Part shown: in pieces, positions 10,136 through 35,197 of the stretch | Layout of the letters: the number at the start of each line of letters is the position of its first letter | Numbering within the stretch: the first letter of the stretch is position 1 | Source: Trichosphaerium sp. ATCC 40318 | Lineage: Eukaryota > Protista > Tubulinea | Direction: 5' to 3' | Assembly: GCA_038496445.1 (NCBI GenBank) | Contig: JALMLS010000304.1 | Location: 372,001-436,000 of the forward strand | Length of the DNA: 64,000 bases | Notes under the pieces: generated by a model | The model's input: only the letters and a program-made list of their open reading frames with translations | Database searches by the model: none | What the model was told of the DNA's origin: nothing | Position numbers and translations under genes: made by a program

Positions 10136-10253
10136 TAGTTATGAACGAATAGTGTACAAAGATACTCTAATTGCCACAAGTCAAATAAAAGGTCATAATT
10201 ATTTTCAATTAAATACCAAGGTGTACACTAAAACAAGATTTATTTTCACTCTT

Positions 10254-13200
10254 TTACAGTGTTGCAGTATTTACCGGTTGCGTTGAACTACCCATCCCTA
10301 CAGGAACTGACGTGGGACCTAAACTTGAGCCAGTTCGTGAATCTCTGGATAATTGTGCATCCATACAAGCACATGCAGGAGTCTTGTGAATAAAGAACGA
10401 GTTTACAGTGATTGCTAAAACAAATTAGATCTTTGTATAAATTCTTTTGTACCTGAACCAGATATGATACACATAGATACAATAATAAATCTTGTAAATC
10501 TATCAATATCTGTTGCAGCGAGTACAACACTCAACATTGCAAAGAAAGCAACATTGTACACTGTGAAGAAGATTATCTTAGATTCATTGTATCTCTTGAT
10601 TGGAATTGTTCTTATTCTAAATGCAAACACACTACAAACCAACAGTAGGCATGCCTAAAAATGTAGATAGTAAGTTCCTTAATACACCATATACAAACTG
10701 TACATTTGATGCAACTATGATGTACATGATAATTTCAAAAGCAGAATTGTATTTGCAAGAATGATAGTTCCGAAATACTCTGATTGAATCGACAACAATC
10801 ACTTCACTTGAAGAACTTCCAACAGTTGTCTGAAGTATTTAGTAACTCCATATTAGTACCAACGATGTACCATTATGACCAAGAGAATAACATGACAAAT
10901 GACAAGAGATCCAACCCACAAAAGAACCATCTTATCACTGATTCTTATCACTTGTGTTGTTTTCAATCGATACAATCTATCAAGACGAAGTGTTTTCCCA
11001 AGTAAGGGCCTACAAAACGGTAAGTAACATCAACAATAATTTAGTCAAGTACCCAAAGAGTAGAATGAAACCAATATCAAGAACCCAAATTGATGCATTA
11101 CATGTGAAATTGGAAACAACATTTGGAAGCAAAGTGAATACAGAGATGTACAACAACGAGCTTCCAACAATCATTAATCCCATGAATAAAGGTGATGACG
11201 CCTACAACAGTCATAAAGTCAGCAACAATAAATGGAGATCATGTACCTTGACTTTTTTGTTGCGAAGACTGAGAACAAGGAAAACAGCCCATCCTACATT
11301 GATACAAAAGAAAATGATGGCAACAATAGTTATGCATATTTCTGTCCAATGACCTGGTCAGGAAGTGATTAGCTTTTGTATTTACTGAAGATGTACCATA
11401 TTGTGGATGAAATATACGTTCATGCCATTTGGGCATTGGATAAATCAAGTCTGCAAGTTTTGTTGGAGGAGGTCCTATCAGAGTGAAACTACCTTTTTCT
11501 TGCATTTGAAGATGTAACCAATCCCTAATACAGTTTCAAAGACAACCTCTTCAATCTGATAATTTTCTTACCTTTGTTGAAATCCATCAACATCCCATGA
11601 GTATCGTCCAGCAAGTGTATCTTCTTTTAATCGGAACATGTTGTCATGTATTATTTCGTCAATCTATGTGTTGTGTTATGAAGAGATAAAATAAAGAATC
11701 AATAAAATCTAAAGTGTACAGTCTTATCTGTACAGGCAGTGGTTGAGATAGAAGAAGCGAGTTGTATTGATGAGTTGGTATTCAACTTATTGATAAAACG
11801 TTAGTGATCGTGGTACATACACTTTGGCTTCCACGTACAACGATAGCATCTCCATAGTCTACCACTGCTTTTTTAATCGCTTTGTTGAGTAACGATAAAA
11901 GAATAGCATAGGTGGTGAAGTCGCTGTTAAGGTCTTTTCCATGTCTCTTTTTGAATCCATCATTAAGTTGTGAATAGTTTCCATATTCTGCCGTTGCAGG
12001 GAACTTCATATCTGCCGAATACTGCCCAACAATAAGTACATACAAATATAAAATAGAACATACCTGAGACTCAGCACTGATATAGTGCCATAGATTCATG
12101 TCCAGATTAACTAGCCTACTTGCTTCCGCATCTGTAAAACCAACATATCTTGGGGTGTAGTCTTCTTTACGAAGGGTATCCATAATCAATCCAACAGCAT
12201 CCCATTGTTTACTACAAATAAACCTGGAAAGTGTCAGAGGTTTTAATTTTATTTTCGTATGTGTAAGGACATACCATGCATCAGCGTCATCCTCTTTTGC
12301 CATCAGAGCTATTTTTGATATGTTCTTAGTCACAGATTCTGAGAAGTTACCAAAGGGTACAGCTAGAAAAGCCTGACGAGCATCAGCATCAACTAAACAA
12401 AATAAGATTGTATTCAAGATGTACAACGTACATTCCACGGCATATTCAGATTTGATGGTGAATCCTTGTAATCGTAACTCATCTCTGAATAGTTTACTCG
12501 AGCACCTTTTCAGTCACATAAGCTAGACGGTGAGAATAAAACGGGAAGCGTACATTGTTCCAAATATATTCTCATCAGAATAAATTAATGTCACTGTTTT
12601 CGCACCAACGACACGTAATGGTGGTAAAGCTGCAAAGAAACCTCGTTCTCTTGGAAGTCCAACACTGAGACAACAAGATGTTCCATTTGCTTGTTCATTG
12701 AATTTGTTGCTTCCTGATACTAGCATTGGACAAGCATTAGAGAAATTAAGTTCTTTGCAATCACTAAACCATATGCTTACGTAGTAGTCGTTTTTTCTGT
12801 TCCATAAATTCAATGATAGGAGGGCTGTGGTCTACAACCACAGGGCTAACAAAAAAGGAAATAGAAGAGTCATTCAACCCTTTCTCGTATATTTCTTTCG
12901 TGTAATTTAAATTATAATATGAATTGATAAGCCTGTTACAATTCGTGAGTATTACCATTGTTGTATTACTAACTGTCCTTGCATAAAAGAACGTACTTTA
13001 AATTCAACCTAATCCTCTCCCCTCCTATCGTGACCGGAGTGTCTTGTTCAACTAATAGATCCGAAAAGTACTCCAAAGTATTCCTTGTCCAGTAAGCACG
13101 AAATAATACAAGAAAATCTGTACTCTAAATCCAATATAACGGCTTCAAAGTCCGGCGTCCACGCTCCAACTTGTACTAACGAACGTGAGAAACGTACAGG

Positions 13201-13586
13201 CAATAGTATTTTGAAGCAAAAAAACGCCTGGATAGTTTGTTAACGTGCTACGTTAACACACGCAGTAAACCAGGCGAATTTTCAAATACTACAGCACCAG
13301 CGTAAGCCGTAAGTGTAGTGGCTGTAGGAAAAAAAACCAAATGAGGATTGTACGGCTTTCAGAGTTATAGACATGTATTGTTAAAACACGCTACCGTCTA
13401 AGCAACACGTGATATGTTTGGTCCAAAGATAGTTGTTCAAAAATAATTAGAAAGAGGCTAAAAATTTCCTCGTAGAGTGGCTAACGCACGTATTGTTATG
13501 TTTTTGACTGCAAAAGCATCCGGAATAGTCAGCAATCCAATAAATATTACAATCATACTTAAAACTCTCGTGTTGAATGCACGCAT
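10254..13586 (-). CDS. Class C (family 3, GABA-B/Grl-like) GPCR, copy 1; 18 exons
   Basis: Signal peptide MRAFNTRVLSMIVIFIGLLTIPDAFA, periplasmic-binding-protein-like ectodomain, YPMPKWHER linker, 7TM motifs ASSPLFM, LLGKTLR and YNESK. All 17 introns spliced in frame. Confidence 0.9.
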
Positions 13587-13675
13587 GGCTATTTAACAAG
13601 CTAAGGTTCTAAATAAGACGAACGGACGATGACCGAAACGAAAATGCGTCTAAAAAGAAAATGAAGCTATGTTCG

Positions 13676-13870
13676 TTGTAGAACACGTGATTATATTCTA
13701 AACGTGCTATGCATCAAATTGTTACAAGTCGTACGTAGTATTGAGTTTGGAAGAATTGCCGCTTTTAGATATCGTCCAACGTGATATCTTATTGTATAAC
13801 GCTGTGAATACGCGTCAACAATACTACGGGCTCGTAAAAAAAGTGACATTGAATTAAATTTGTGAACTAC
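13676..13870 (-). promoter_or_regulatory. Conserved upstream block of the GPCR genes (CACGTG box plus GTAGTTCACAA motif), repeated before all six copies
   Basis: The + strand motifs tgtagaacacgtgatta and ttgtgaact recur at similar spacing near 13680, 17425, 21122, 25627, 30226 and 35303. Confidence 0.55.
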
Positions 13871-14023
13871 AACGTGTAGTTTGTGAACTGGTTTAAACAC
13901 TATCTACATTGCCTCTCCAACAAGTGCGGTTAATTAGGCTTGGTTACGACACTTCAAGCGGAAAAAAATAACATGGAGAGCAATTGTTTAATGTTTATTT
14001 TTCCATGAACCAACCTACCTTTT

Positions 14024-17000
14024 TTAAACGGTACACGGTTGCGTTGAACTGCCCATTTTAGGAGTTGTAATGCGAGTTACACTTGAACCGGCTCGTGAAT
14101 CTCTGGACAATTGTGTATCCATACAAACACATGCAGGAGTCTTGTGAATAAAGAACGAGTTTACAGTGATTGCTAAAAGTACATTAGATTGTTGTATGAA
14201 CACTTTTTTTGGTATAACCTACCTGAACCAGAAATGATACACATAGATACAATAATAAATCTTGTAAATCTATCAATATCTGTTGCAGCGAGTACAACAC
14301 TCAACATTGCAAAGAAAGCAACATTGTACACTGTGAAGAAGATTATCTTAGATTCATTGTATCTCTTGATTGGAATTGTTCTTATTCTGAATGCAAACAC
14401 ACTACAAACCAACAATAGAAATGCCTAGAAGAAAAATATTTGATGAGTTCCTTATTACACCATATACAAGTCGTACATTTGATGCAACTATGATGTACAT
14501 GATAATTTCAAAAGCAGAATTGTATTTGCAAGAATGATAGTTCCGAAATACTCTGATTGAATCAACAACAATCACTTCACTTGAAGAACTTCCAACAGTT
14601 GTCTGAAATATTTAGTAACTTCATATTAGTACCAACGGTGTACCATTATGACCAAGAGAATAACATGACAAATGACAAGAGATCCAACCCACAAAAGAAC
14701 CATCTTATCACTGATTCTGATCACTTGTGTTGTTTTCAATCGATACAATCTATCAAGACGAAGTGTTTTCCCAAGTAAGGGCCTACAAAACGGGTAAGTA
14801 ATGTCAACAATAATTTAGTTGTCTAAGTATTAAGTACCCGAAGAGTAGAATGAAACCAATATCAAGAACCCAAATTGATGCATTACATGTGAAATTGGAA
14901 ACAACATTTGGAAGCAAAGTGAATACAGAGATGTACAACAACGAGCTTCCAAGAATCATTAATCCCATGAATAAAGGTGATGACGCCTAAAAAAGTCATA
15001 ATGGTTACATTAAAAGATGAAAGACCTTGACTTTTTTGTTGCCAAGACTGAGAACAAGAAAAACAGCCCATCCTACATTGATACAAAAGAAAATGATGGC
15101 AACAACAGTTACAAATATTTCTGTCCAATGACCTGATGATAACACGAGTTAGGTATTGGTATATTTCTAAAGATGTACCATATTGTGGATGAAATATACG
15201 TTCATGCCATTTGGGCATTGGATAAATCAAGTCTGCTAGTTTTGTTGGAGGAGGCCCTATCAAGGTGTAACGACCCTTTTCTTGAATCTGAAGATGTAGC
15301 CAATCCCTAATACGGTTTAATGTAAAAAGAGACAACTTCTTCAATCTGATAATTTTCTTACCTTTGTTGAAATCCATCAACATCCCATGAGTATCGTCCA
15401 GCAAGTGTATCTTCTTTGAATCGAAACATGTTGTCACGTATTATTTCGTCAATCTATTCGCTGTCGTGAGGATCAAAATACAATCTAAATAGTGTACGGT
15501 CTTATCTGCACAAGCACAGGTTGATGTAGAAGAAGTGAGTTGTATTGATGAGTTGGCATTCAACTTATTCAAAAAAGGTTAGCTGATTCATACACTTTAC
15601 TTCCATGACGTACAACAATAGCATCTCCATAATCTATCACTGCTTTTTTAATCGCTTTGTTGAGTAAAGATAGAAGAATAGCATAGCTGGTAAAATCGCT
15701 GTTGAGGTCTCTTCCATATCTCTTTTTGAATCCATCATTGAGTTGTGAATAGTTTCCATATTCTTCTGTTGCAGGGAATTTCATATCTGCCGAATACTGC
15801 CCAACAATAAGGACATAAAATATAAAATAGAACATACCTGAGACTCAGCACTGACATAGTGCCATAGATCCATATCCAGGTTAACTAACCTTCTTGCATC
15901 CGCATCTGTAAAACCAACATATCTTGGGGTGTAGTCTTCTTTACGAAGGGTATCCATAATCAATCCAACAGCGTCCCATTGTTTACTACAAATAAACCTG
16001 GAAAGTGTCAGAGGTTTTAATTTATTTTCGCAAGTGCAAAGACATACCATGCATCAGCGTCATCCTCTTTCGCCATCAGAGCTATTTTTGATATGTTCTT
16101 AGTCACAGATTCTGAGAAGTTACCAAAGGGTACAGCAAAATATAAGGATAAAGATGAAGCATTAACTATCGCAAAATAAGATTGTATTCAAGGTGTACAA
16201 CGTACACTCTACGGCATATTCAGATTTGATTGTGAATCCTTGTAATCGTAACTCATCTCTGAATAGTTTACTCGAGCACCTTTTCAGTCACATAAGCTAG
16301 ATGGTGAGAATAAAACGGAAACGTACATTGTTCCAAATATATTCTCATCAGAATAAATTAATGTCACTGTTTTCGCACCAACAACACGCAATGGTGGTAA
16401 AGCTGCAAAGAAACCTCGTTCTCTTGGAAGTCCAACACTGAGACAACAAGATGTTCCATTTGCTTGTTCATTGAATTTGTTGCTTGTTGACACTACACTG
16501 AAGCATCAGAGATATTAACTCTACAATAAAACACGTGCGTACACAGTAATCGTTTGTTCTGTTTCATAAATTCAATAATAGGAGGGTTGTGGTTTACAAA
16601 CGCAGGTCCAAGAAAAAAGGAAATTGATGAGTCGTTCAACCCTTTCTCGTATAATTCTTTCGTGTAATTTAAATTATGCTGTGCATTGATAAGCCTGTTA
16701 AAAATCGTGAGTTACCATTGAAATAAATAACTGTCATTCTTGCATTATAGAACGTACTTTAAATTCAACCTAAGCCTCTCCCCTCCTATCGTAACCGGAG
16801 CGTCTTGCTCAACTAACAGATCTGCAAAGTACACCAAAGCATCCCTTGCGCTGGTAAGGAGGAGAATACCACAAAAAAAAAACTGTACTGTAAATCCAAT
16901 ATGATGACCTCAAAGTCCGGTGTCCACGCTCCAACTTGTACTAAAACTAGGTAAGAAACGTACGAGCAAAAAACCGACAGAAAAGTTGGCGACATTTGCG

Positions 17001-17329
17001 CTACCAGGCGGATCTCAAACATTACAGAAAAAAAACAGCGCCAGTAAGTGTAATGGTTATAGGAAAGAAAAACCCAAATGAGGATTTTTTTTGTTTTGGA
17101 CCGTTTAGACAATGTATTTTAAAACATACTATCTCTAACCAACACGTGATACACGTTGGTCCAAAGATAGTTGTTCAAGTCAAAAATATTGGTAAACAGG
17201 TTTTAAATCTTGTCAAATAAGTTTCTACGCACGTATTGTTATGTTTTTGACCGCGACAGCATCCGTAATCGGCAACAATCCAATAAATATCACAATCATA
17301 TTTAATGCTATCGCGTAGTATGCACACAT
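14024..17329 (-). CDS. Class C GPCR, copy 2
   Basis: Same exon structure as copy 1; C-terminus ...SSTQPCTV*. One donor is weakened to GTCTTT. Confidence 0.85.
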
Positions 17330-17751
17330 GGTTTTTTAACGAGCTAAGGTTGAAATAAGATGAGGGGCGTTGCCAAAACGAAAACGTTTCGAAAACAGGA
17401 AATGAAGTTTGGTTTGTATATTGTAGAACACGTGATTACAATATAAACGTGCTCTACAGCAAATCGATAGAAGGCGTACGTAGTTGTATACTTTGTCGCG
17501 TTTGGTTATTGCCAGCTTGTCCAGTCGTTGTTTACAAGCTGTAAAACGTGTCAATAATACTACGGCTCAAACAAAAGTATGTAATTTGTGAACTAACTAC
17601 AAACTGGTAAACGATCAATCAATACAATACCTATGTCTGAAAAACATGTTTAGCTAGGCGCCGGTACCTTCAAGTAACACAAAATGACCTGGTGCCCAAA
17701 ATAAGTAGTGTGAGAATTTATTTAATTAGTCAAATAACAGAAGTTTGCTGT

Positions 17752-20700
17752 TTACATAGCACTATCTGTCGGTTGTGTTGAACTACCCGCTTTAGGTGTT
17801 GATGTACGACCTACACTAGAATCGGTTCGTGAATCTATGGACGCCTGTGCATCCATACAAACACATGCAGGGGTCTTGTGAATAAAGAACGAGTTTACAG
17901 TGATTGCTAAAAAGTACATTAGATTGTTGTATGAACACTTTTGTACCTGAACCAGAAATGATACACATAGATACAATAATAAATCTTGTAAATCTATCAA
18001 TATCTGTTGCAGCGAGTACAACACTCAACATTGCAAAGAAAGCAACATTGTAAACAGTGAAGAAGATTATCTTAGATTCATTGTATCTTTTGATTGGAAT
18101 TGTTCTTATTCTAAACGCAAACACACTACAAACCAACAATAAGGATGCCTAGAATAAAAATATTTGATGAGTTCCTTATAACACCATATACAAGTCGTAC
18201 ATTTGATGCAACTATGATGTACATGATAATTTCAAAGGCAGAATTGTATTTGCAAGAATGATAGTTCCGAAATACTCTGATTGAATCGACAACAATCACT
18301 TCACTTGAAGAACTTCCAACAGTTGTCTGAAATATTTAGTAACCTCAGTAGTATTAAACGGTGTACCATTATGACCAAGAGAATAACATGACAAATGACA
18401 AGAGATCCAACCCACAAAAGAACCATCTTATCACTGATTCTGATCACTTGTGTTGTTTTCAATCGATACAATCTATCAAGACGAAGTGTTTTCCCAAGTA
18501 AGGGTCTACAAACGGATAAGTAATGTCAACGATAATTTAGTCAAGTACCCAAAGAGTAGAATGAAACCAATATCAAGAACCCAAATTGATGCATTACATG
18601 TGAAATTGGAAACAACATTTGGAAGCAAAGTGAATACAGAGATGTACAACAACGAGCTTCCAAGAATCATTAATCCCATGAATAAAGGTGATGACGCCTA
18701 CAACAGTCATAAAGTAAGAAATACAGAACACAGTCATAGCTTACCTTGACTTTTTTGTCATGAAGATTAAGAACAAGGAAAACAGCCCATCCTACATTGA
18801 TACAAAAGAAAATGATGGTAACAACAGTTACAAATATTTCTGTCCAATGACCTGGTCAGGAAGTGATTAGCTTTTGTATTTACTGAAGATATACCATATT
18901 GTGGATGAAATATACGTTCATGCCATTTGGGCATTGGATAAATCAAGTCTGCTACTTTCGTTGGAGGAGGTCCTATCAGAGTGAAACTACCTTTTTCTTG
19001 CATTTGGAGATGTAACCAATCCCTAATACAGTTTCAAAGACGCTGTCAATCTTATAATTTTCTTACCTTTGTTGAAATCCATCAACATCCCATGAGTATC
19101 GTCCAGCAAGTGTATCTTCTTTGAATCGAAACATGTTGTCACGTATTATTTCATCAATCTATTTACTGTCGTGAGGATCAAAATAAAATCTAAATAGTGT
19201 ACGGTCTTATCTGCACAGGCAGTGGTTGAGATAGAAGAAGCGAGTTGTATTGATGAGTTGGCATTCAACTTTTCCAAAAAACGTTAGTGATCGTGGTACA
19301 TACACTTAGCGTTCACGTACAACAATAGCATCTCCATAATCTATCACTGCTTTTTTAATCGCTTTGTTGAGTAACGATAGAAGAATACCATAGCTGAGAG
19401 ATCCAGTGTCAAGGTCTATTCCATATCTTTCTTTATATCCATCATTGAGTTGTGAATAGTTTCCATATTCTGCCGTTGCAGGGAACTTCATATCCGCCGA
19501 ATGCTATGAAAAAATAACAATGTGCGAAAAACACTGTAGATACCTGAGACTCAGCAGTAACATAGTGCCATAAATCCATATCCACATGCTTTAATCTGCT
19601 AAGGACCGCATCTGTAAAACCAACATATCTTGGGGTGTAGTCTTCTTTACGAAGGGTATCCATAATCAATCCAACAGCATCCCATTGTTTACTACAAATA
19701 AACCTGGAAAGTGTCAGAGGTTTTAATTTAATTTTCGTATGTGTAAGGACATACCATGCATCAGCGTCATCCTCTTTTGCCATCAGAGCTATTTTTGATA
19801 TGTTCTTAGTCACAGATTCTGAGAAATTACCAAAGGGTACAGCACGAAAAACCTGACGAGCTGTAGCATCAACTAAACAAAATAAGTCTTTGTTTAATGG
19901 TACAACGTACATTCTATGGCATATTCAGATTTGATCGTGAATCCTTGTAATCGTAACTCATCTCTGAATAGTTTACTTGAGCACCTTTATGGACACAAAA
20001 TTAAACTGAGAATAAAATGGGAAACGTACATTACTCCAAAAATATTCTCATCAGAATAAATTAATGTCACTGTTTTCGCACCAACGACACGTAATGGTGG
20101 TAAAGCTGCAAAGAAACCTCGTTCTCTTGGAAGTCCAACACTGAGACAACAAGATGTTCCATTTGCTTGTTCATTGAATTTGTTGCTTGTTGACACTACA
20201 CTGAAGCATCAGAGATATTAACTCTACAATAAAACACGTGCGTACACAATAATCTCTTGTTCTGTTCCATTAATTCGATGATGTGAGGGTTGTGGTCTAC
20301 AACCACAGGTCCAACAAAAAAGGAAATAGAAGAGTCATTCAATCCTTTCTCGTATATTTCTTTCGTGTATGTAAAGTTAAACCGTGCATTCATAATTCTG
20401 TTACAATAATCATGTTAGTATTGTAATTGTTTTTAACACCTTGCATACAACGTACTTTACTTTCAACCTAAATCTCTCCCCTCCTATTGTAACCGGAGTG
20501 CCTTTTTCAACTAATAGATCTGCAAAGTACTCCAAAGCATTCCTAGCGCTGGTAAGGAGTAACATACTACAAAAAAAACCTGTACTTTAAATTATTTATG
20601 AGGAACTCTATGCTATCGGGCCACCCTCCCACTTGTACTTAAAAACAGAGTAAGAAAGATCATTTTTAATGTTTTGAACCGCTACATGATCGGGCGTTTA

Positions 20701-21039
20701 CACGCATGCACAGTGATCCACCGGAAAAGTAAAAAACGGCGAAAAACAACGTAAGAGACGGGAACCAAGGTGCAGGGGAAAAAACCCCAAATGAGATATG
20801 TGGCTTTGGAGTTTTAAACGATCTATTTTTATACCGTATTTCCCTTACCAGCACGTGATATGTGTTGGTCCAAAGGTAGTTGTTCAGGTCAAAAATGATT
20901 TGAAAAAAGGTTGTAAATCTCCTCATACAAGTTTCTACGCACGCATTGTTATGTTTTTGACTGCAAAAGCATCCGGAATAGTCAGCAATCCAATAAATAT
21001 CACAATCATATTTAATGCTCTCGTGTTTAATGCGCGCAT
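17752..21039 (-). CDS. Class C GPCR, copy 3
   Basis: Same exon structure; most divergent ectodomain patches; ends QPTDSAM*. Confidence 0.88.
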
Positions 21040-21922
21040 GGTTATTATCAAGCTAAAGTTCTAATAAGACGAATGAACGATGCTCAAAACGAAAACGAAG
21101 GGAATGCAGTTTGGTTCGTTGTAGACCACGTGATTACAACATACACGTCTAAGTCGTACTTAGTTGATCGAGTTGTTTTGTAGTCGCTTTTAGTATTTGG
21201 CCAGTCGTCCAAGTGTTTTATTAAGTTGTGAAACGTGTCAATAATACTACGCTTCTTAAAAAATTTGAGATACAACTTGTGAACTACAACGTGTAAACAC
21301 TAAAAGCCTCCGAAAACCGACATACCAACTGATAGGAACATACTGAGCGGCTAAAATCCGGAACGGATGAAACACCCGTGATAGGTTATGTACATTGCGA
21401 AATGTTGGATAGGTCGCCATGCCTTGTTTTACCGCAATGTTCGCACCTACCTACCATTAAAATTTAGTATGTTTAGCTATGACAATGTTCATGAGAATGG
21501 CTCCGCTTTTTGGCGTGGGTTACCGACAATTTTAATCAACTCATACACTACAAGATATCTTTTTGTGTGAAGAGTTTTGATAAATCCGAAGAAGTTAACT
21601 CCTCGCTAAAAAACAATTATACCTTATTTTGCCAACACTGCGCATAGAGGATGGCATTATTTCGACTCTTTGCGTGAGGTTATCGCAGAAAACTCAGAAC
21701 TTTTTCGTAACCCATGATCCTGCCTGAATGTATCTAAACAGTTAGACTAGGCATAAAAATACGCATACAGTGGCGGAAAGGTTTAACTTAAAATCGACAT
21801 TTAGAACTTTTGATAAAAAAAGCGTTTGCTCACATACGCATTTTTTTGTACAGTGGTTTTTGTGAAGGCCAAATTCGAAATTGTCATTGGCAACTTCGCT
21901 ATATTGTGTAGGCCCTCATAAA

Positions 21923-22152
21923 GTTGGTTCCTAAAGGCAACAAAGGTTGAAAAAGATGAAGTAAAACATGGTACGCTGATATCCAAGGTAGAGTGTTTGT
22001 TTACCCTTTGTCAATAGGTTTAACTAGGTTGTCAATGGCGTTTGAGACACGTGAAGAGTATCTTCTATAGAAAAAACCAGGCATATAATGGAAGATCAGT
22101 CAGGGTTGCATTAAAAGCTGGCTACAAGCTTTTAAGGTCTACTACAACAAGG
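21923..22152 (+). pseudogene. Duplicated internal fragment (exon-intron-exon) of the 8071-10135 gene
   Basis: gttggttcctaaaggcaacaaaggttg...ctacaacaagg matches ~9099-9320, including the intron. Confidence 0.9.
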
Positions 22153-22186
22153 CATACGCCAAAACAAAATACTAATAAAATTTGTT

Positions 22187-25100
22187 TTATATATCCTTAT
22201 ACAGTGTTGCACTATCTGCAGGTTGTGTTGAACTGCCCCTCCCTTTTGTAGTTGATGCACGGCCCATACTTGAGCCAGTGTGGGAATCTTTGGACAATTG
22301 TGTATCCATACAAGCACATGCAGGAGTCTTGTGAATAAAGAACGAGTTCACAGTGATTGCTAAAAACAATTAGATCTTTTGTATAAATTCTTTTGTACCT
22401 GAACCAGAAATGATACACATAGATACAATAATAAATCTTGTAAATCTATCAATATCTGTGGCAGCGAGTACAACACTCAACATTGCAAAGAAAGCAACAT
22501 TGTACACAGTGAAGAAGATTATCTTAGATTCATTGTATCTCTTGATTGGAATTGTTCTTATTCTGAATGCAAACACACTACAAACCAACAATAAGGATGC
22601 CTAAAACAAAACAATTTGATGAGTTCCTTATAGCACCATTATAAAAGTCGTACATTTGATGCAACTATGATGTACATGATAATTTCAAAGGCAGAATTGT
22701 ATTTGCAAGAATGATAGTTCCGAAATACTCTGATTGAATCGACAACAATCACTTCACTTGAAGAACTTCCAACAGTTGTCTGAAGTATTTAGTAACTCCA
22801 TATTAGTACCAAAGATGTACCATTATGACCAAGAGAATAACATGACAAATGACAAGAGATCCAACCCACAAAAGAACCATCTTGTCACTGATTCTGATCA
22901 CTTGTGTTGTTTTCAATCGATACAATCTATCAAGACGAAGTGTTTTCCCAAGTAAGGGCCTACAAAAGCGTAAGTAACATCAACAATAATTTAGTCAAGT
23001 ACCCAAAGAGTAGAATGAAACCAATATCAAGAATCCAAATTGATGCATTACATGTGAAATTGGAAACAACATTTGGAAGCAAAGTGAATACAGAGATGTA
23101 CAACAACGAGCTTCCAAGAATCATTAATCCCATGAATAAAGGTGATGACGCCTAAAACAGCCTTAATGGTTACTGTAAAAGATGAAAGAGTTACTACATA
23201 CCTTGACTTTTTTGTTGCGAAGACTGAGAACAAGGAAAATAGCCCATGCTGCATTGATACAAAAGAAAATGATGGCAACAATAGTTACAAATATTTCCGT
23301 CCAATGACCTGGTCAGGAAGTGATTAGCTTTTGTATTTACTGAAGACATACCATATTGTGGATGAAATATACGTTCATGCCATTTGGGCATTGGATAAAT
23401 CAAGTCTGCCAGTTTTGTTGGAGGAGGTCCTATCAGAGTGAAACTACCCTTTTCTTGCATTTGAAAATGTAACCAATCCCTAATACAGTTTCAAAGACCT
23501 GTCAATCTTATATTTTTCTTACCTTTGTTGGAACCCATCAACATCCCATGAGTATCGTCCAGCAAGTGTATCTTCTTTTAATCGGAACATGTTGTCACGT
23601 ATTATTTCATCAATCTACGTCATGTTATAAAGAATCAAAATAAAATCTAAATAGTGTACGGTCTTATCTGCGCAAGCACAGGTTGATGTAGAAGAAGTGA
23701 CTTGTATTGATGAGTTGCCATTCAACTTATTGATAAAACGTTAGTGATCGTGATACATACACTTTACTTCCATCACGTACAATAATAGCATCTCCATAGT
23801 CTATCACTGCTTTTTTAATCGCTTTGTTGAGTAGTGAAAACAGAATAGCAAAGGTGGTAAAGTCGCTGTTAAGGTCTCTTCCATGTCTCTTTTTGAATCC
23901 ATCATTAAGTTGTGAATAGTTTCCATATTCTGCCGTTGCAGGGAACTTCATATCCGCAGAAAACTACAGAAAACAATTTCAATGTGCTAAAAAACATAAA
24001 ATAGAACATACCTGAGACTCAGCAGTAACGTATTGCCATAGATCCATGTCCAATCGTATTACCCTGTTTGGAGTTGCATCTGTAAAACCAACATATCTTG
24101 GGGTGTAGTCTTCTTTACGAAGGGTATCCATAATCAATCCAACAGCGTCCCATTGTTTACTACAAATAAACCTGGAAAGTGTCATAGGTTTTAATTTATT
24201 TCGTATGTGTAAGGACATACCATGCATCAGCGTCATCCTCTTTCGCCATCAGAGCTATTTTTGATATGTTCTTAGTCACAGATTCTGAGAAATTACCAAA
24301 GGGTACAGCAATGTACGCTATACGAGCCTCAGCATCAACTAATAGAATAAGATTGTATTCAAGGTGTACAACGTACACTCTACGGCATATTCAGATTTGA
24401 TAGTGAATCCTTGTAATCGTAACTCATCTCTGAATAGTTTACTTGAGCACCTTTATGGACACAAAATCAGACAGTAAGTAAACGTTGAGAATTGATAGTA
24501 AGAATAAAATGGGAAACGTACATTGTTCCAAAAATATTCTCATCAGAATAAATTAATGTCACTGTTTTCGCACCAACGACACGTAATGGTGGTAAGGCTG
24601 CAAAGAAACCTTGTTCTCTTGGAATTCCAACACTGAGACAACAAGATGTTCCATTTGCTTGTTCATTGAATTTGTTGCTTGTTGACACTACACTGAAGCA
24701 TCAGAGATATTAACTCTACAATAGAACATGTGCCTACACAATAATCGTCTGTTATGTTCCATTAATTCAATAATAGGAGGGCTATGGTTTACAAACGCAG
24801 GGCTAATAAAAAAGGAAATAGAAGAGTCGTTCAACCCTTTCTCGTATATTTCTTTCGTGTATGTACTGTTAAACTGTCCATTGATAAGCCTGTTACAATA
24901 TCGTGAGTACTACCAGCGTTGAATAAACCTGCCACATTGCGTTGTACGTACTCATATTTCAACCTATATTTCTCCCCTCCTATTGTGACCGGAGCGTCTT
25001 GATCAACTATTAGATCTGAAAAGTAGTCCACAGAATCCCTTGCGATGGTAAGGAGAAAATTGCAATAATAATTTGTACTTTAAATCATATATGAAGCTCT

Positions 25101-25525
25101 CAAACCCGTTGGACCACGCTCCCACTTGTACTAATATAAAGTGAAAAACACGTAGTCGTTGTTTTTAAAGCAACTAAAACTCCTGAACAGTTACACGCTT
25201 TCTGTGTAAGTAAATAAGGCGGATTTCTAACACCATAGTAAAAACAGCAAAGGTGAATCATAACGGGAAAACATCGGAAGCTTTTTGGTTTTGGAGTTTT
25301 TACCCCGATGTATTTTTAAAACGCGCTACCCCTTACCAACACGCGATATGCGTTGGTCCAAAGATAGTTGCTCAGGTCAAAAATAATTAGAAAAGGCAGT
25401 AAATCTCCTCATACAAGTGTTTACGCACGTATTGTTATGTTTTTGACTGCAAAAGCATCCGGGATAGTCAGCAATCCAATAAATATTACAATCATACTCA
25501 ATCCCCTCGTGTTTATTACACACAT
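22187..25525 (-). CDS. Class C GPCR, copy 4
   Basis: Same exon structure; the usual TAA is TAT here, extending the tail to ...ATLYKDI*. Confidence 0.88.
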
Positions 25526-26593
25526 AGTTACTAGAAAGCTAAGGTTGAAATAAGATGAATGAACGTTGCCGAAACGAAAGAAAAATCGCCAAAAACGACA
25601 AGCCAGAAAATGAGGCGATCTCCGTTGTAGAACACGTGATTACATTATAAACGTGCTCTACATCAACAAATCGCTAAAAGTCGTACTTAGTTGTATTCAC
25701 TCTGTTTTATTCGCTTGTTATCGCTTTTAGCTATTGGCCAGGTATTCCAGGTGTTGTTGTATTAAGCTGTAAAAACGTGTCAACAATACTGCGCTTCTAA
25801 TAAATTTGACATACAGTTTGTGAACTACACCTACAAACCTCCGAAAGCTGACAGGCCAACTGAAAGGAACATAATAGGCGGCAACAATAGGGTCGGATGA
25901 AACACATCCAGTACAGGACGAAATGATAGGATATGTACATTGTGAATGTTGGTTAGGGCGGCATGCCTTGTTTTAAAGCTATGTTCAAACTTACCACTAA
26001 AGGAAGTGTTAGGTTTAAGCCATTTTTTCTAACCTCTGTGAGTGCTCCCAATACGCTGTTTTACGCTTAAGGAAACGTTTTATAATACTCATTATCCCAA
26101 ACTGTGTGTCATTGTAAAACGTATTTTGTAGACACAAAGAACGTTTGTACACCTTATTATTGAGCGTCTAAAGTATGTATCAATGGGTTTTATGTGGTTA
26201 ACAGCCTTCAGTGCTGTTTGTGGTTGAACGAACTTTTTCATCTAAGTTACGCTACAGCAGCACTCTATTGGCATTTTAAATTAAATTAGAGTATTAAAAC
26301 AGTTCCAGCACAACTACAATACAATGAATTGCCCGTACAAATTCAAAAGAGTAAATACCATTCAAAATAGAAGCAGTTTTATCAGTGTAGGATAACCAGG
26401 GCTAGACAAGTCATTTTCATCGTGTTGCATTTGATCACGTGTCAAAAATAATAAATTTCTTAAAAGTGGTACGAAATCTATTACAGAGCTTTGTTGTATG
26501 ATAAAAACATCCACAATTACGGTGTCTGTTCCAACAAGTAAAAGTAGAGCTTTGAGTGAATCTGTTTCCTGAAAATGAGAATGGCGCGTAGGT

Positions 26594-26765
26594 TAATGTT
26601 TTAGTGCAATGAAGTTCGATCGTTTGATGAAATAGAGTCGCAAGGACTCTGCTCGCTTTTTCTTCGTCAATACGAAGAAATAAATCTGGGGATTGATGTG
26701 CTTCAGGATTGGCCATTATCGTTAACTATCCAGTGGTTTGCTCCTTTGATGAAGAAGGCCAAATT
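26594..26765 (-). pseudogene. Decayed fragment of the hydrolase gene at 35861-37803
   Basis: Encodes ANPEAHQSPDLFLRIDEEKASRVLATLFHQTIE, near-identical to ~35960-36110, with a 1-nt insertion upstream of ANPEA. Confidence 0.9.
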
Positions 26766-26839
26766 TGACGATTTTGGCAAGGTGAGCTTGAAAAAGTCTA
26801 CAACAAGGTGTACGCTAAACAAGATTTATTTTCACTCTT

Positions 26840-29800
26840 TTACAGTGTTGCAGTATTTATCGGTTGTGTTGAACTACCCATCCCTACAGGAGCTGACGTG
26901 GGACCTAAACTTGAGCCAGTTCGTGAATCTCTAGACAATTGTGTATCCATACAAGCACATGCAGGAGTCTTGTGAATAAAGAACGAGTTTACAGTGATTG
27001 CTAAAAGTACATTAGATTGTTGTATGAACACTTTTGTACCTGAACCAGAAATGATACACATAGATACAATAATAAATCTTGTAAATCTATCAATATCTGT
27101 TGCAGCGAGTACAACACTCAACATTGCAAAGAAAGCGACATTGTACACTGTGAAGAAGATTATCTTAGATTCATTGTATCTTTTGATTGGAATTGTTCTT
27201 ATTCTGAATGCAAACACACTACAAACCAACAGCAAGAATGCCTAAAATAAAAATGTATCTGGTGAGTTCCTTAATACATTATACAAGTCGTACATTTGAT
27301 GCAACTATGATGTACATGATAATTTCAAAAGCAGAATTGTATTTGCAAGAATGATAGTTCTGAAATACTCTGATTGAATCGACAACAACCACTTCACTTG
27401 AAGAACTTCCAACAGTTGTCTGAAATATTTAGTAACCTCAGTAGCATTAAGCGAGTGTACCATTATGACCAAGAGAATAACATGACAAATGACAAGAGAT
27501 CCAACCCATAAAAGAACCATCTTATCACTGATTCTGATCACTTGTGTTGTTTTCAATCGATACAATCTATCAAGACGAAGTGTTTTCCCAAGTAAGGGCC
27601 TATAAACGGGTAAGTGTCAACAATAATTTAGTTGTCTAAGTACCCGAAGAGTAGAATAAAACCAAGATCAAGAACCCAAATAGATGCATTACATGTGAAA
27701 TTGGAAACAACATTTGGAAGCAAAGTGAATACAGAGATGTACAACAATGAGCTTCCAACAATCATTAATCCCATGAATAAAGGTGATGACGCCTACAACA
27801 GTCATAAAGTCAGCAACAATAAATGGAGATTATGTACCTTGACTTTTTTGTTGCCAAGACTGAGAACAAGGAAAATAGCCCATCCTACATTGATACAAAA
27901 GAAAATGATGGCGACAATAGTTACAAATATTTCCGTCCAATGACCTGGTCAAGAAGTGATTAGCTTTTGTATTTACTGAAGATGTACCATATTGTGGATG
28001 AAATATACGTTCATGCCATTTGGGCATTGGATAAATCAAGTCTGCCAGTTTCGTTGGAGGAGGTCCTATCAGAGTGAAACGACCCTTTTCTTGCATTTGA
28101 AAATGTAACCAATCCCTAAACATTGTTTTAAAAAGATACAATCTTCAATCTGATAATTTTCTTACCTTTGTTGAAATCCATCAACATCCCATGAATATCG
28201 TCCAGCAAGTGTATCTTCTTTGAATCGAAACATGTTGTCATGTATTATTTCGTCAATCTATGTGTTGTGTTATGAAGGGATAAAAATACAATCTAAATAG
28301 TGTACGGTGTTATCTGCACAGGCACTGGTTGAGATAGAAGAAGTGACTTGTATTGATGAGTTGGCATTCAACTTTTCCAAAAAAAGTTAGTGATCGTGAT
28401 ACATACACTTAGCGTTCACGTACAACAATAGCATCTCCATAATCTATCACTGCTTTTTTAATCGCTTTGTTGAGTAACGATAAAAGAATAGCATAGGTGG
28501 TAAAGTCGCTGTTGAGGTCTCTTCCATGTCTCTTTTTGAATCCATCATTAAGTTGTGAATAGTTTCCATATTCTGCCGTTGCAGGGAACTTCATATCCGC
28601 AGAAAACTACAGAAAACAATTTCAATGTGCTAACAAACATAAATGGGACATACCTGAGACTCAGCAGTAACGTATTGCCATAGATCCATGTCCAATCGTA
28701 TTAACCTGTTTGGGGTTGCATCTGTAAAACCAACATATCTTGGGGTGTAGTCTTCTTTACGAAGGGTATCCATAATCAATCCAACAGCATCCCATTGTTT
28801 ACTACAAATAAACCTGGAAAGTGTCAGTTTTAATTTATTTCGTATGTGTAAGGACATACCATGCATCAGCGTCATCCTTTTTCGCCATCAGAGCTATTTT
28901 TGATATGTTCTTAGTCACAGATTCTGAGAAGTTACCAAAGGGTACAGCAATGTACTCTATAAGAGCCTCAGCGTCAACTAGCAGAATAAGATTGTATTCA
29001 AGGCGTACAACGTACACTCTATGGTATATTCAGATTTGATTGTGAATCCTTGTAATCGTAACTCATCTCTGAATAGTTTACTTGAGCACCTTTATGGATA
29101 CAAAATCAGACAGTAAGAATAAAACGGGAAACGTACATTGTTCCAAAAACATTCTCATCAGAATAAATTAATGTCACTGTTTTAGCACCAACAACACGTA
29201 ATGGTGGTAAAGCCGCAAAGAAACCTCGTTCTCTTGGAAGTCCAACACTGAGACAACAAGATGTTCCATTTGCTTGTTCATTGAATTTGTTGCTTGTTGA
29301 CACTACACTGAAGCATCAGAAATATTAACTCTACAATAAACAGGTGCGCACACAGTAATCGTTTTTTCTCTTCCATTAATTCAATAACAGGAGGGCTATG
29401 GTTTACAACAGCAGGTCCAACAAAAAAGGAAATAGAAGAGTCGTTCAAACCTTTCTCGTATAATTCTTTCGTGTATGTACTGTTAAACTGTCCATTGATA
29501 AGCCTGTTACAATATCGTGAGTACTACCAGCGTTGAATAAACCTGCCACATTGCGTTGTACGTACTCATATTTCAACCTATATTTCTCCCCTCCTATTGT
29601 GACCGGAGCGTCTTGATCAACTATTAGATCTGAAAAGTAGTCCAAAGAATCCCTTGCGCTGGTAAGGAGAAAATTGCCAATAATAATTTGTACTTTAAAT
29701 CTAATATGAAGCTCTCAAACTCCTTGGACCACGCTCCCACTTGTACTAATATAAAGTGAGAAACACGTAGTCGTTGTTTTTAAAGCAACTAAAACTCCTG

Positions 29801-30128
29801 AACAGTTACACAGTAAATAAGGCGGATTTCTAACACCATAGTAAAAACAGCAAAGGTGAATCATAACGGGTAAACATCGGAAGCTTTTTGGTTTTGGAGT
29901 TTTTACCCCGATGTATTTTTAAAACGCGCTACCCCTTACCAACACGTGATACGCGTTGGTCCAAAGATAGTTGCTCAGATCAAAAATGATTAGAAAAGGC
30001 AGTAAATCTCCTCATACGAGTGTTAACGTACGTATTGTTATGTTTTTGACTGCGAAAGCATCCGGAATAGTCAGCAATCCAATAAATATTACAATCATAC
30101 TTAATACTCTCGTGTTTAATACACACAT
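26840..30128 (-). CDS. Class C GPCR, copy 5
   Basis: Same exon structure; N-terminal half closest to copy 4; ends QPINTATL*. Confidence 0.88.
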
Positions 30129-31089
30129 GGCTACTAGCAAGCTAAGCTTAAATAAGATGCATGAACGTTGCCCGAAACGAAAAATCGTCAAAAACGACAA
30201 GCCAGAAAATGAAGCGATCTTCGTTGTAGAACACGTGATTACATTATAAACGCGCTCTACATCAACACATTGCCAGAAGTCGTACTCAGTTGTATTCACT
30301 CTGTTTTATTCGCTTGTAATCGCTTTTATCTAGTATTCCAGTTGTACTACGCTGTAAAAACGTGTCAACAATATACTACGTGCTTGTAAAAATTTAGACT
30401 TGTAGTTTGTGAACTGGCAAATGGCTGACTAAAACACAATAGCTACAATGTCTCCGAAAAATATGTTTGTAAGACGTTTTGAGTAATGTGATGTATTGAG
30501 CCATTTCATTATTACTATGGTGAGAAAACGTACTGCCAGCTATCAACTATTTTTTGCATAGTAACTTTTATTTTCACAATTTCCAAAGGTACTGTCGATA
30601 AGCTCGGTTTTCTGGTGTTTTCATATTCTGACTTTGCGGAAAAACAAGTTTTTATGAGAACATGCTCTAAACCTCAATACGGATAACATGAACCACTCTT
30701 TAGCTGCTCACATACGTGCTCTTGAATATGATAAACTAATAAATGATTTGCAGCACATGTTACTCTCCGCCTCCCGAAAGTGACATTGCTGGAGTCCATA
30801 TTTTCCTACGTTCATAACCCTGGGCGTTATAGGATAACAAAAGCCGGTAACCTCAGTAGTTTGAGGCACCAATGTTGTATTCAGAGCCTCAAACAACATG
30901 TTGGAACAGCGTGTAGCCTTTCCGGCTGTCGACTCTGTACGCACGCACATATACTGTTTTTTTAAGGGTGCGGTATCGATGGGATTGATAACGTTTCTGT
31001 TCGAGTGTTTAGCGTAAAGGCTTTGTCACTGTTCCTTTCTCGACAAAAAAAAAACTGGAAAAAAACTGGCTTTGCTGAGTTTCCTTATC

Positions 31090-31923
31090 TATTGTCCGTA
31101 TCATTCAAGTTTGCTAATCTTTGCAACTTTTTGCTGTTTGTGACTTTTGATTTTCGAGTTTAGTCAGATCTGACAGATCTTGCAAGTTCTGTTAGTTCTT
31201 ACAGAACTGACAATTTTGCTAGAACTAGCAGACCCAACGTTTGAAATGTGATTCACGTTATTGAAGGCTTGCTAGGCGGAAAAATCATGAATTTGCACTG
31301 GCCACGTGATTTTAAAAACCCACCTAACATTTATTTTATTTTACAATAATATGGTTACATGGTGTCCGTACCACAATATCGCCTCCAGAGATACTTTGAG
31401 CGCTTTTGGAATTAATCTTTACGGTTTTTTCCCGTTGATACGCCTCTTGACGGTTTTTTCCCCGTTGATACGCCTCTTGACGGTTTTTTCCCCGTTGACG
31501 CCTCTTGACGCTATGATTGTGTCAGCACTAGCGCGTGGCGGCGTAGTACGTTAGGCAACAAATAACAAGTAATTCGTACCTTTTGGTCTTGTTCGGCTCC
31601 TTTGGGCGCTTCTATGGTGAGTGTAGCATTTACAAGCGCACTTACGCAAAATACTGCGATAGTCTTGTTAGATGATGTGACTTTGACATTGTATTTTTTT
31701 CTTGCCTTAAGGTACATAAGCACGGCAAGCAAGGTACATTGACTGGAGTTGTGGAATGTGATGCATTCACATTGCACTGAACCTTCAAGTTTTTAACAGA
31801 TCTGACAGAACTTACAAGAACTAGCAAAAGTGACAAGATCTGACAGATCTGTTACTTCTTGCAAGATCTTACACTTTGATACTTCTGCCAAACCTGTCGC
31901 AAACTTGAATGATACGTACAATA
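31090..31923. mobile_element. Non-autonomous TIR DNA transposon (MITE-like), ~830 bp
   Basis: 25-bp terminal inverted repeats, tattgtccgtatcattcaagtttgc (31090-31114) and gcaaacttgaatgatacgtacaata (31899-31923), 24/25 match. Subterminal cagatctgacag and agaactagca repeats at both ends; no transposase ORF. Confidence 0.8.
31421..31510. repeat. ~30-bp tandem repeat x3 inside the MITE-like element
   Basis: Unit acggttttttccccgttgatacgcctcttg repeated three times with small indels. Confidence 0.95.
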
Positions 31924-31953
31924 CATGCTAAAACAACCTTTATTTTCACTCTT

Positions 31954-34900
31954 TTACAGTGTTGTACTATCTACTGGTTGTGTCGAACTACCCATCCCTA
32001 CAGGAGCTGATACACGACCTAAACTTGAGCCAGTTCGTGAATCTCTAGACAATTGTGCATCCATACAAGCACATGCAGGAGTCTTGTGAATAAAGAACGA
32101 GTTTACAGTGATTGCTAAACGTACATTAGATTGTTGTATGAACACTTTTGTACCTGAACCAGAAATGATACACATAGATACAATAATAAATCTTGTAAAT
32201 CTATCAATGTCTGTGGCAGCGAGTACAACACTCAACATTGCAAAGAAAGCAACATTGTACACAGTGAAGAAGATTATCTTAGATTCATTGTATCTTTTGA
32301 TTGGAATTGTTCTTATTCTAAACGCAAACACACTACAAACCAACAATAGAAATGCCTAAAATAAAAATATATCTGGTGAGTTCCTTAATACATTATACAA
32401 GTCGTACATTTGATGAAACTATGATGTACATGATAATTTCAAAAGCAGAATTGTATTTGCAAGAATGATAGTTCCGAAATACTCTGATTGAATCAACAAC
32501 AATCACTTCACTTGAAGAACTTCCAACAGTTGTCTGAAATATTTAGTAACCTCAGTAGCATTAAGCGAGTGTACCATTATGACCAAGAGAATAACATGAC
32601 AAATGACAAGAGATCCAACCCACAAAAGAACCATCTTGTCACTGATTCTGATCACTTGTGTTGTTTTCAATCGATACAATCTATCAAGACGAAGTGTTTT
32701 CCCAAGTAAAGGTCTGCAAGGGGATAAGTAACATCAACAATAATTTATGTCTAAGTATTAAGTACCCGAAGAGTAGAATGAAACCAATATCAAGAATCCA
32801 AATTGATGCATTACATGTGAAATTGGAAACAACATTTGGAAGCAAAGTGAATACAGAGATGTACAACAACGAGCTTCCAACAATCATTAATCCCATGAAT
32901 AAAGGTGATGACGCCTAAAAAAGTCATAATGGTTACAGTAAAAGATAAAAGAGTTACTACATACCTTGACTTTTTTGTTGCCAAGACTGAGAATAAGAAA
33001 AACAGCCCATCCTACATTGATACAAAAGAAAATGATGGCAACAACAGTTATGAATATTTCTGTCCAATGACCTGATATAACAAATTAGATGATTGATTGT
33101 ATCAAAGATGTACCATATTGTGGATGAAATATACGTTCATGCCATTTGGGCATTGGATAAATCAAGTCTGCCAGTTTCGTTGGAGGAGGTCCTATCAGAG
33201 TGAAACGACCCTTTTCTTGCATTTGAAAATGTAACCAATCCCTAAACATTGTTTTAAAAAGATACTCAATCTGATAATTTTCTTACCTTTGTTGAAATCC
33301 ATCAACATCCCATGAGTATCGCCCAGCAAGTGTATCTTCTTTGAATCGAAACATGTTGTCATGTATTATTTCGTCAATCTATGTGTTGTGTTATGAAGGG
33401 ATAAAAATACAATCTAAATAGTGTACGGTCTTATCTGCACAGGAACTGGTTGAGATAGAAGAAGTGAGTTGTATTGATGAGTTGGCATTCAACTTTTCCA
33501 AAAAAAGTTAGTGATCGTGATACATACACTTAGCGTTCACGTACAACAATAGCATCTCCATAATCTATCACTGCTTTTTTAATCGCTTTGTTGAGTAACG
33601 ATAGAAGAATACCATAGCTGAGAAAGTCGCTGTTGAGGTCTCTTCCATGTCTCTCTTTGAATCCATCATTGAGTTGTGAATAGTTTCCATATTCTGCTGT
33701 TGGAGGGAACTTCATATCGGGTGAATACTGCCCAACAATAAGTACGTACAAATATAAAATAGAACATACCTGAGACTCAGCACTGACATAGTGCCATAGA
33801 TCCATATCCAGGTTAACTAACCTTCTTGCATCCGCATTTGTAAAACCAACATATCTTGGGGTGTAGTCTTCTTTACGAAGGGTATCCATAATCAATCCAA
33901 CAGCATCCCATTGTTTACTACAAATAAACCTGGAAAGTGTCAGAGGTTTTAATTTAATTTTCGTATGTGTAAGTACATACCATGCATCAGCGTCATCCTC
34001 TTTCGCCATCAGAGCTATTTTTGATATGTTCTTAGTCACAGATTCTGAGAAATTACTAAAAGGTACAGGAATATATGTGTTTAAAGATGAAGCATTAACT
34101 ATCACAAAATAAGATTGTATTCAAGGTGTACAACGTACACTCCATGGCATATTCAGATTTGATTGTGAATCCTTGCAATCGTAACTCATCTCTGAATAGT
34201 TTACTCGAGCACCTTTTCAGTCACATAAGCTAGATGGTAAGAATAAAACGGGAAAACGTACATAACTCCAAACAGATTCTCGTCAGTATAAATTAATGTC
34301 ACAGTTTTAGCACCAACAACACGTAATGGTGGTAAAGCCGCAAAGAAACCTCGTTCTCTTGGAAGTCCAACACTGAGACAACAAGATGTTCCATTTGCTT
34401 GTTCATTGAATTTGTTGCTTGTTGACACTACACTGAAGCATCAGAGATATCAACTCTACAATAAACCAGATACGTACACAGTAATCGTCTGTTTTGTTCC
34501 ATTAATTCAATGATGTGGGGATTATGCTCTACAATAGCAGGGCTAATAAAAAAGGAAATAGAAGAGTCATTCAACCCTTTCTCGTATATTTCTTTCGTGT
34601 ATGTGAAATTGTAATTTGTATTGATTATTCTAGTGCAATCGTGAGTACCATTGTATACCTGTCATCCTTGTATTATATGTACTCGTATTTCAACCTAAAT
34701 TTCTCCCCTCCTATTGTGACCGGAGCATCTTGTTCAACTAACAGATCCGAAAAGAAGTCCGCAGAATCCCTTGGCGCTTGTTAGAGAAAAATATCACAAA
34801 AAAAAACACAATAATAATCTGTACTTTAAATCTAATATAAAACTCTCAAACTCCTTGGGCCACGCTCCCGCTTGTACTACAACAAAGTAAGAAACGCCAT

Positions 34901-35197
34901 CGTTATTGTTTTTGAGGCACAAAAAACCGCCTGGATAATTTGCCACACTTTTACACTACACGTATTTGCAGTAATCCAAGGATGTACTTTAAAACGGACT
35001 ACTCTCTAACCCACACGCGATACGCGTTGGTCCAAAGATAGCTGTTCAGGTCAAAAATAATTTGGAAAACGTTTTGAATCTCATCAAACAAGTTTCTACG
35101 CACGTATTGTTATGTTTTTGACCGCAAAAGTATCCGGAATAGTCAGCAATACAATAAATATTACAATCATATTTACTCTCGCGTAGTATGCACACAT
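31954..35197 (-). CDS. Class C GPCR, copy 6
   Basis: Same exon structure; shorter intron 1; ends QPVDSTTL*. Confidence 0.88.

Follow-up and report, generated by a model that had tools for sequence, protein, structure and literature searches.

A 64,000-nt window from the genome of Trichosphaerium sp. ATCC 40318 (contig JALMLS010000304.1; ~36% G+C) carries on its minus strand, at positions 10254-35197, an array of six direct repeats, each of which encodes a class C G-protein-coupled receptor (GPCR). Its limits, 10254 and 35197, are the stop codon of copy 1 and the start codon (ATG) of copy 6, respectively, and the start-to-start spacing of successive copies is 3.77, 3.72, 4.45, 4.64 and 5.11 kb. 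When the entire window was searched by tblastn with three exon probes, exactly six copies and no seventh were recovered, and an Rfam search of the window gave no matches. Gene models were built by aligning the six units, collecting the GT/AG pairs common to at least 5 copies and imposing the union of the introns on every copy; intron boundaries were then compared with the joints of RNA contigs. After splicing, all 6 copies proved to be intact 18-exon open reading frames (ORFs) with GT..AG introns (Table 1). The first intron measures 227-314 nt and introns 2-17 only 38-71 nt, most of the donors being GTAC, GTAT or GTAA.

Some of the introns are easily mistaken for coding sequence. The lengths of introns 6-8 of copy 1 (12393-12431, 12224-12274 and 12022-12063) are multiples of 3 and these introns are free of stop codons, as they are in copies 3 and 6, and the raw reading frame spans 243 codons through them. 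Thus, transcripts that retain these introns stay in frame, and searches with the raw ORF are misled. A homologous Trichosphaerium protein, P0001 (see below), independently lacks precisely those residues that reading through the in-frame introns 7 and 8 would add. Intron 16 offers two candidate donors located 9 nt apart (22645-22653 in copy 4, with the homologous 9 nt present in each copy). The RNA joint uses the upstream donor, GTACGA, which is intact in copy 4; the downstream GT is replaced by TT in this copy only, a change explained by the position of the donor in use, 9 nt further upstream.

Evidence of expression came from RNA contigs of two public runs, which were placed on positions 10150-16149, covering copies 1 and 2. 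Spliced contigs backed 11 of the 17 introns, with CT..AC joints at introns 5, 7-15 and 16. Joints at introns 5, 11 and 12 belong to copy 1, for which introns 8, 10 and 15 are additionally represented by joints crossing between copies, and those matching introns 7, 9, 10, 13, 14 and 16 belong to copy 2. A further contig of 194 nt matches, with 1 mismatch, the 3' end that is specific to copy 1 (10223-10416). Because the RNA joints fall at the modelled boundaries, the genes are transcribed and spliced; this holds for at least copy 1 and one transcript of the copy 2/6 type.

The encoded proteins share the same architecture. A hydrophobic N-terminus (amino acids (aa) 1-26), corresponding to a signal peptide, is followed by an ectodomain of ~430 aa with 8-9 N-glycosylation sequons ahead of the first transmembrane segment (TM1), by seven hydrophobic segments at aa 458-708 that make up the seven-transmembrane (7TM) region, and by a short, variable C-terminal tail of ~40 aa. 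Compared with Pfam, the exon 17 piece matched 7tm_3 with E=1.3e-7 (positions 179-241 of 251) and the exon 14 piece with E=0.002 (positions 48-91), both scores remaining under the whole-protein cut-off because the queries were fragments. Together, the 7tm_3 matches, the seven hydrophobic segments and the large N-terminal ectodomain bear out the assignment of the genes to class C in the first-pass annotation, which had been made from the letters of the DNA. Between aa 363 and TM1, every copy contains only one or two cysteines (aa 379 and 381); the receptors therefore lack a cysteine-rich domain of the NCD3G type and have a GABA-B-like layout.

The first-pass annotation had also quoted six series of short ectodomain segments (hereafter, patches 1-6) in which the copies differ, and all six could be reproduced letter for letter in our protein alignment. 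With the revised exon 16 donor, 173 of the 756 alignment columns are variable (175 of 759 in an earlier alignment). These columns are clustered to an extent exceeding 5000 of 5000 permutations and are separated by invariant runs of 36, 25, 27, 63 and 80 aa. Mean identity reaches 98.6% in TM2-TM7 versus 86.1% in the ectodomain. Thus, TM2-TM7 is indeed nearly invariant, the ectodomain variation is indeed gathered in short patches, and the picture of one conserved signalling module joined to ectodomains that differ in such patches stands. The earlier wording that the copies 'differ radically' is appropriate inside the patches but not overall, the whole proteins being 86-93% identical, and TM1 and the C-terminal tail have to be added to the variable regions. 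None of the copies has an indel between aa 9 and 737; the introns are rich in indels. Patch variants recur among the copies and affect predicted glycosylation. In patch 2, a sequon is located at N88 in copies 1-2 and at N86 in copies 3-6; N113 in patch 3 is a sequon only in copies 4-5; and the NASS variant of patch 4, common to copies 2 and 6, adds a sequon at N211 that is found only in these two copies. Copies 2 and 6 also have the same patch 5.

Analysis of the nucleotide sequences revealed recombination between the copies, which form a fine-grained mosaic. In the unit alignment, which contains 336 informative sites, 52% of the site pairs are incompatible, and the pairwise homoplasy index (PHI) was 0.365 versus 0.527 +/- 0.008 in permuted data, with 0 of 1000 permutations reaching the observed value (p<0.001). 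The set of copies sharing intron variants shifts from intron to intron, being {1,3,4,5} in intron 12, {1,5} in intron 13, {1,4} and {5,6} in intron 15, and {2,3} and {5,6} in intron 16. The 7TM exons, with 52 variable positions in 769 nt, display the same behaviour: 162 of their 253 informative pairs (64%) fail the four-gamete test.

Homogenisation of the copies differs between exons and introns. Intron divergence is ~0.2 all along the gene. Divergence at four-fold sites is 0.19 in exons 2-4, equal to that of the introns there (0.21), 0.107 in exons 5-12, and 0.065 [0.035-0.099] in the 7TM exons, where it is approximately three-fold less than in the interleaved introns (0.197 [0.146-0.247]; p=3e-5). 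Given that the introns are ~0.2 diverged and not homogenised, conversion seems to be confined to exons of 107-202 nt. These results point to exon-confined, short-tract gene conversion on top of purifying selection. Along the stretch of exons 13-17 and introns 13-17 (10453-11353 in copy 1; introns of 40-55 nt), homogenisation stops at the exon borders.

To assess selection, we estimated dN/dS, the ratio of nonsynonymous to synonymous change, by the pairwise Nei-Gojobori method (NG86), which has low power for six recombining sequences; it was 0.09 for the 7TM region, 0.05-0.12 for the frozen ectodomain blocks and 0.37-0.85 for the individual patches (0.56 pooled). Synonymous sites in the patches are near saturation. 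The highest value in any 15-codon window, 1.24, is based on very few sites. The first-pass annotation had proposed diversifying (positive) selection and had itself named ratios below 1 in the patches as an outcome that would refute it; in no patch does the ratio exceed 1. Thus, positive selection on the patches is not demonstrated, and TM2-TM7 and the ectodomain core are under strong purifying selection. Synonymous divergence (pS) is low in the 7TM region (0.08) and the frozen blocks (0.05-0.08) and rises to 0.25-0.59 in the patches (0.45 pooled), and it correlates with nonsynonymous divergence (pN) across 20-codon windows (rho 0.71, p=2e-6). Because the contrast between frozen and variable regions appears largely in pS as well, it points to gene conversion combined with differing constraint, and the high pS of the patches indicates that they are old, weakly constrained islands rather than fast-evolving ones. 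Two segments located beside patches, aa 112-131 and aa 282-301, combine high pS with low pN; tolerance to change is therefore specific to sites and not to regions.

Table 1. Receptor genes, ectodomain patches and upstream motifs of the array (positions in the window)
Feature	Position	Strand	Description
Copy 1	10254-13586	-	18 exons, 752 aa; exons 1-12 (11397-13586) encode the ectodomain, exons 13-18 (10254-11353) the 7TM region and tail
Copy 2	14024-17329	-	18 exons, 748 aa
Copy 3	17752-21039	-	18 exons, 750 aa; most divergent in patches 1, 5 and 6
Copy 4	22187-25525	-	18 exons, 756 aa
Copy 5	26840-30128	-	18 exons, 752 aa; closest pair with copy 4 (92.8% identity)
Copy 6	31954-35197	-	18 exons, 751 aa
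Patch 1, copy 1	13138-13161	-	aa 38-45, WTPDFEAV; loop after first predicted strand; dN/dS 0.37
Patch 1, copies 2-6	16903-16926, 20600-20623, 25093-25116, 29708-29731, 34839-34862	-	
Patch 2, copy 1	12902-12925	-	aa 82-89, NSYYNLNY; dN/dS 0.69
Patch 3, copy 1	12818-12847	-	aa 108-117, SPVVVDHSPP; dN/dS 0.42
Patch 4, copy 1	12364-12390	-	aa 211-219, DADARQAFL; dN/dS 0.67
Patch 5, copy 1	12106-12129	-	aa 281-288, AEASRLVN; dN/dS 0.49
Patch 6, copy 1	11905-11925	-	aa 335-341, SDFTTYA (TGSLSYG in copy 3); dN/dS 0.85
ATCACGTG[GT]T motif, copy 1	13682-13691	-	~100 nt upstream of ATG
ATCACGTG[GT]T motif, other copies	17427-17436, 21125-21134, 25631-25640, 30230-30239, 35307-35316		~100 nt upstream of ATG

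A phmmer search of 1.84 billion representative proteins, of reduced sensitivity since the query was the raw ORF including the three in-frame introns, yielded a single true relative of the ectodomain, P0001, which is a 229-aa fragment of an MMETSP transcript from Trichosphaerium sp. ATCC 40318 itself. P0001 matched profile positions 180-287 of the Pfam family Peripla_BP_6 with E=0.0047, a score below the cut-off, and language-model features place it next to Peripla_BP_6 clusters, which make up 20 of its 20 listed neighbours (score 0.96). With only exon 5 as the query, the language-model search yielded no usable match. Neither hhalign nor hmmsearch found anything significant when the joined ectodomains were compared with LivJ and LivK, and a hidden Markov model built from 120 LivJ relatives scored the ectodomains at a non-significant E=0.15-0.8; a search for homologues that started from LivJ brought back nothing but relatives more than 86% identical, so that the profile was not deepened. 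The Pfam match and the language-model neighbours of P0001 are weak and indirect evidence, and they concern the C-terminal half of the ectodomain; on this evidence, the ectodomain may be a clam-shell, probably a very divergent type-I periplasmic-binding-protein (LIVBP-like) domain.

We consider it probable that the array is a class C receptor family shaped by purifying selection and exon-level conversion, in which the patches are old loops that escaped homogenisation and may be located in or close to the ligand site. Strong purifying selection (dN/dS 0.05-0.12) keeps the ectodomain core and TM2-TM7 alike, and frequent short-tract conversion, largely limited to highly similar exons, acts on top of it; on the simplest reading, mismatches and indels block conversion in introns and patches. 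The patches have escaped homogenisation: their synonymous sites have the same age as the introns, they tolerate amino acid change (dN/dS ~0.4-0.85) and they keep a fixed length. If they form exposed loops in or close to the ligand site, they may allow the copies to sense related but different ligands, with a single signalling output common to all copies, as in the vertebrate class C chemoreceptor families. Their divergence may persist because conversion there is selected against, is blocked by mismatches, or both.

Several observations weigh against this explanation and concern both the conversion and the ligand site. The mosaic of near-identical tandem copies could in part be an artefact of assembly or polishing, and the independent RNA contigs, which match at 99-100%, span only parts of copies 1-2. 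Constraint on synonymous sites is another possible cause of the low synonymous divergence of the 7TM exons. As for the ectodomain, no relevant match emerged when the exons were compared one by one with Pfam at E values up to 10, and neither P0001, nor the profile A2, nor the window exons themselves matched any PDB sequence. The hhalign alignment of the joined ectodomains with Escherichia coli LivJ is colinear over 330 columns, yet non-significant (probability 0.5%, P=0.13). The AlphaFold model of P0001, computed with the window exons as alignment rows, was unusable (predicted local distance difference test score of 36), and none of these comparisons directly supports a fold for the N-terminal half, which holds patches 1-4. 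Furthermore, gain and shift of sequons in patches 2-4 speak more for exposed loops on the surface than for a buried pocket, and that the copies differ in their ligands is something we purely infer, plausible as it is.

A possible but rather unlikely alternative is that the patches are surface loops under little constraint that play no part in ligand choice and that diverged early, after which mismatch blocked conversion; the copies would then be functionally redundant or differ in regulation only. Such neutral divergence would agree with the dN/dS below 1 in all patches and with the parallel movement of pS and pN, and sequons that appear and vanish in patches 2-4 are as expected for exposed loops. 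The promoter-proximal flanks, at 67-84% identity, would leave room for regulatory divergence. Unconstrained loops, however, usually tolerate in-frame indels, and the ectodomain is indel-free at a level of divergence at which the introns have many. Nor does neutrality sit well with the intact ORFs and splice sites in 6 of 6 copies, or with aa 112-131 and 282-301, where variability is again site-specific.

Unlikely, in our judgement, is the version that follows the first-pass annotation, namely, that the patches line the cleft of a Venus-flytrap fold and diverge under positive diversifying selection for new ligand specificities, like the pockets of MHC proteins or V2Rs, and that nothing but purifying selection freezes the 7TM region. 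The sharp clustering of variable residues and the unchanging loop length speak for this version, and in established theory islands of divergence in a converted gene family are the expected product of selection against homogenisation. The dN/dS values of the patches, individually and pooled, speak against it, as does the synonymous divergence, which is also highest in the patches and marks them as old rather than fast. Moreover, purifying selection alone fails to explain the three-fold deficit in four-fold-site divergence of the 7TM exons relative to the introns. The bearing of the LivJ comparison is mixed. In the non-significant alignment, the ligand contacts of LivJ (listed in PMC6983066) that coincide with patches are Tyr18 (patch 1), Leu77 and Cys78 (patch 3) and Phe276 (first residue of patch 6), which would favour a cleft location; Ser79, Ala100-Ala103, Tyr150 and Tyr202 fall on invariant columns of the same alignment. 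With 4 of 11 contact positions variable versus a background of 26%, this alignment reveals no enrichment of variability at the contacts and offers no more than a lead.

We regard it as improbable that the array works as a cassette system, in which exon-confined conversion in very short tracts would keep the signalling module identical and occasionally shuffle entire variants of the pocket loops, yielding new loop combinations on a constant chassis; patches 4 and 5, common to copies 2 and 6, and patch 1, common to copies 1 and 2, would be instances of such shuffling. On this reading, the exon-only homogenisation might even stem from repair that uses spliced RNA rather than DNA as the template. 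It appears very improbable that the 7TM exons are frozen by selection on synonymous sites, acting on mRNA structure, on the kinetics of translation or membrane insertion, or on splicing signals in tiny exons, rather than by conversion. This possibility draws on the same three-fold difference between 7TM four-fold sites and adjacent introns, and on the fact that conversion tracts would have to end where exons end. Constraint alone, however, does not produce a pattern in which 64% of the 7TM-exon pairs fail the four-gamete test; the base composition at four-fold sites (T 44%, A 36%) merely mirrors that of the AT-rich genome; and exons 2-4 show no deficit. Somatic or templated hypermutation was rejected, there being no template-like repeat in the array and the patch variants being shared between copies as ordinary germline-inherited variants.

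The flanks of the genes contain a shared motif, ATCACGTG[GT]T, which includes an E-box. It precedes each copy and recurs in intron 1 of three of them (13404, 17141 and 29941), giving 9 matches versus 0.26 expected, all within the array and none outside. In flanks that are otherwise 67-84% identical, the motif is a candidate shared regulatory element. An RNA contig joins position 13600 to 13735, with 3 unplaced letters in between, which suggests that copy 1 has a 134-nt intron (13601-13734) in its 5' untranslated region; this intron would contain the upstream CACGTG motif. The two longer spacers hold fragments of the genes that border the array on its two sides. Positions 21923-22156, between copies 3 and 4, resemble 9099-9323 (83%), and positions 26610-26780, between copies 4 and 5, resemble 35953-36126 (93%), within an esterase-like gene. 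The latter gene (35861-36709, minus strand), located upstream of copy 6, has an alpha/beta-hydrolase match of the platelet-activating factor (PAF) acetylhydrolase/chlorophyllase type (E=4e-7). The gene fragments in the spacers have the look of remnants left by unequal exchanges during the build-up of the array.

Among known receptors, the Grl proteins of Dictyostelium are likewise an amoebozoan multi-gene class C family; they combine a binding-protein-type N-terminal domain, which the array receptors may share, with 7tm_3, and GrlE has been reported to bind gamma-aminobutyric acid (GABA) and glutamate (PMC12716839). Unlike in the Grl proteins, the ectodomain of the array receptors is unrecognised by Pfam on any exon and has a single database relative, the likeness being one of layout. 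We know of no report of a tandem array of six Grl genes with a conversion mosaic. In metazoan GABA-B receptors, the clam-shell is joined straight to the 7TM region without NCD3G (PMC12716839). The array receptors, with at most 2 cysteines in the linker, also lack the cysteine-rich domain, whereas their short 40-aa tails show no evident coiled coil or heterodimerisation; here too, the likeness of the ectodomain is one of layout. The 7TM regions of amoebozoan class C receptors do not cluster with metazoan subfamilies (PMC12716839). The array appears to be a tandem expansion, specific to this lineage, of class C receptors of the GABA-B/Grl-like type.

The V2R, OlfC and T1R arrays of vertebrates resemble the Trichosphaerium array in consisting of tandem paralogues with a conserved 7TM region and variation in few ectodomain segments. 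A weaker resemblance, drawn from the LivJ alignment, is a possible division into invariant 'backbone-binding' and variable 'side-chain' positions. The vertebrate receptors differ, however, in having a cysteine-rich domain and an ANF_receptor fold that can be recognised from sequence. In V2Rs, pocket sites are reported to be under positive selection, in contrast to the dN/dS below 1 in the patches of the array. Bacterial LIVBP/Peripla_BP_6 proteins such as LivJ are linked to the array by the weak match and the neighbours of P0001, but not by the alignment of the whole ectodomain, which is non-significant. With respect to the mode of evolution, the closest parallels are cases of concerted evolution with divergence islands, as described by the models of Innan and Teshima and exemplified by primate opsins and rbcS, in which conversion homogenises most of the coding sequence and short segments stay divergent. 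The array differs from these in its unhomogenised introns, and its contrast between exons and introns appears to be sharper than in the textbook cases.

Clam-shell class C receptors are the amino acid, taste and pheromone sensors of animals; to our knowledge, what free-living amoebae sense through receptors of this class is almost unknown. The array provides six natural variants of one receptor, differing at ~50 defined residues on a constant scaffold, and as a natural experiment it conveniently lends itself to mapping what determines ligand specificity in a protist receptor. The unusually sharp contrast in homogenisation between exons and introns is of population-genetic interest in its own right. 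More generally, the array is a clean instance of purifying selection and gene conversion together mimicking the appearance of a frozen module with hypervariable patches, without positive selection.

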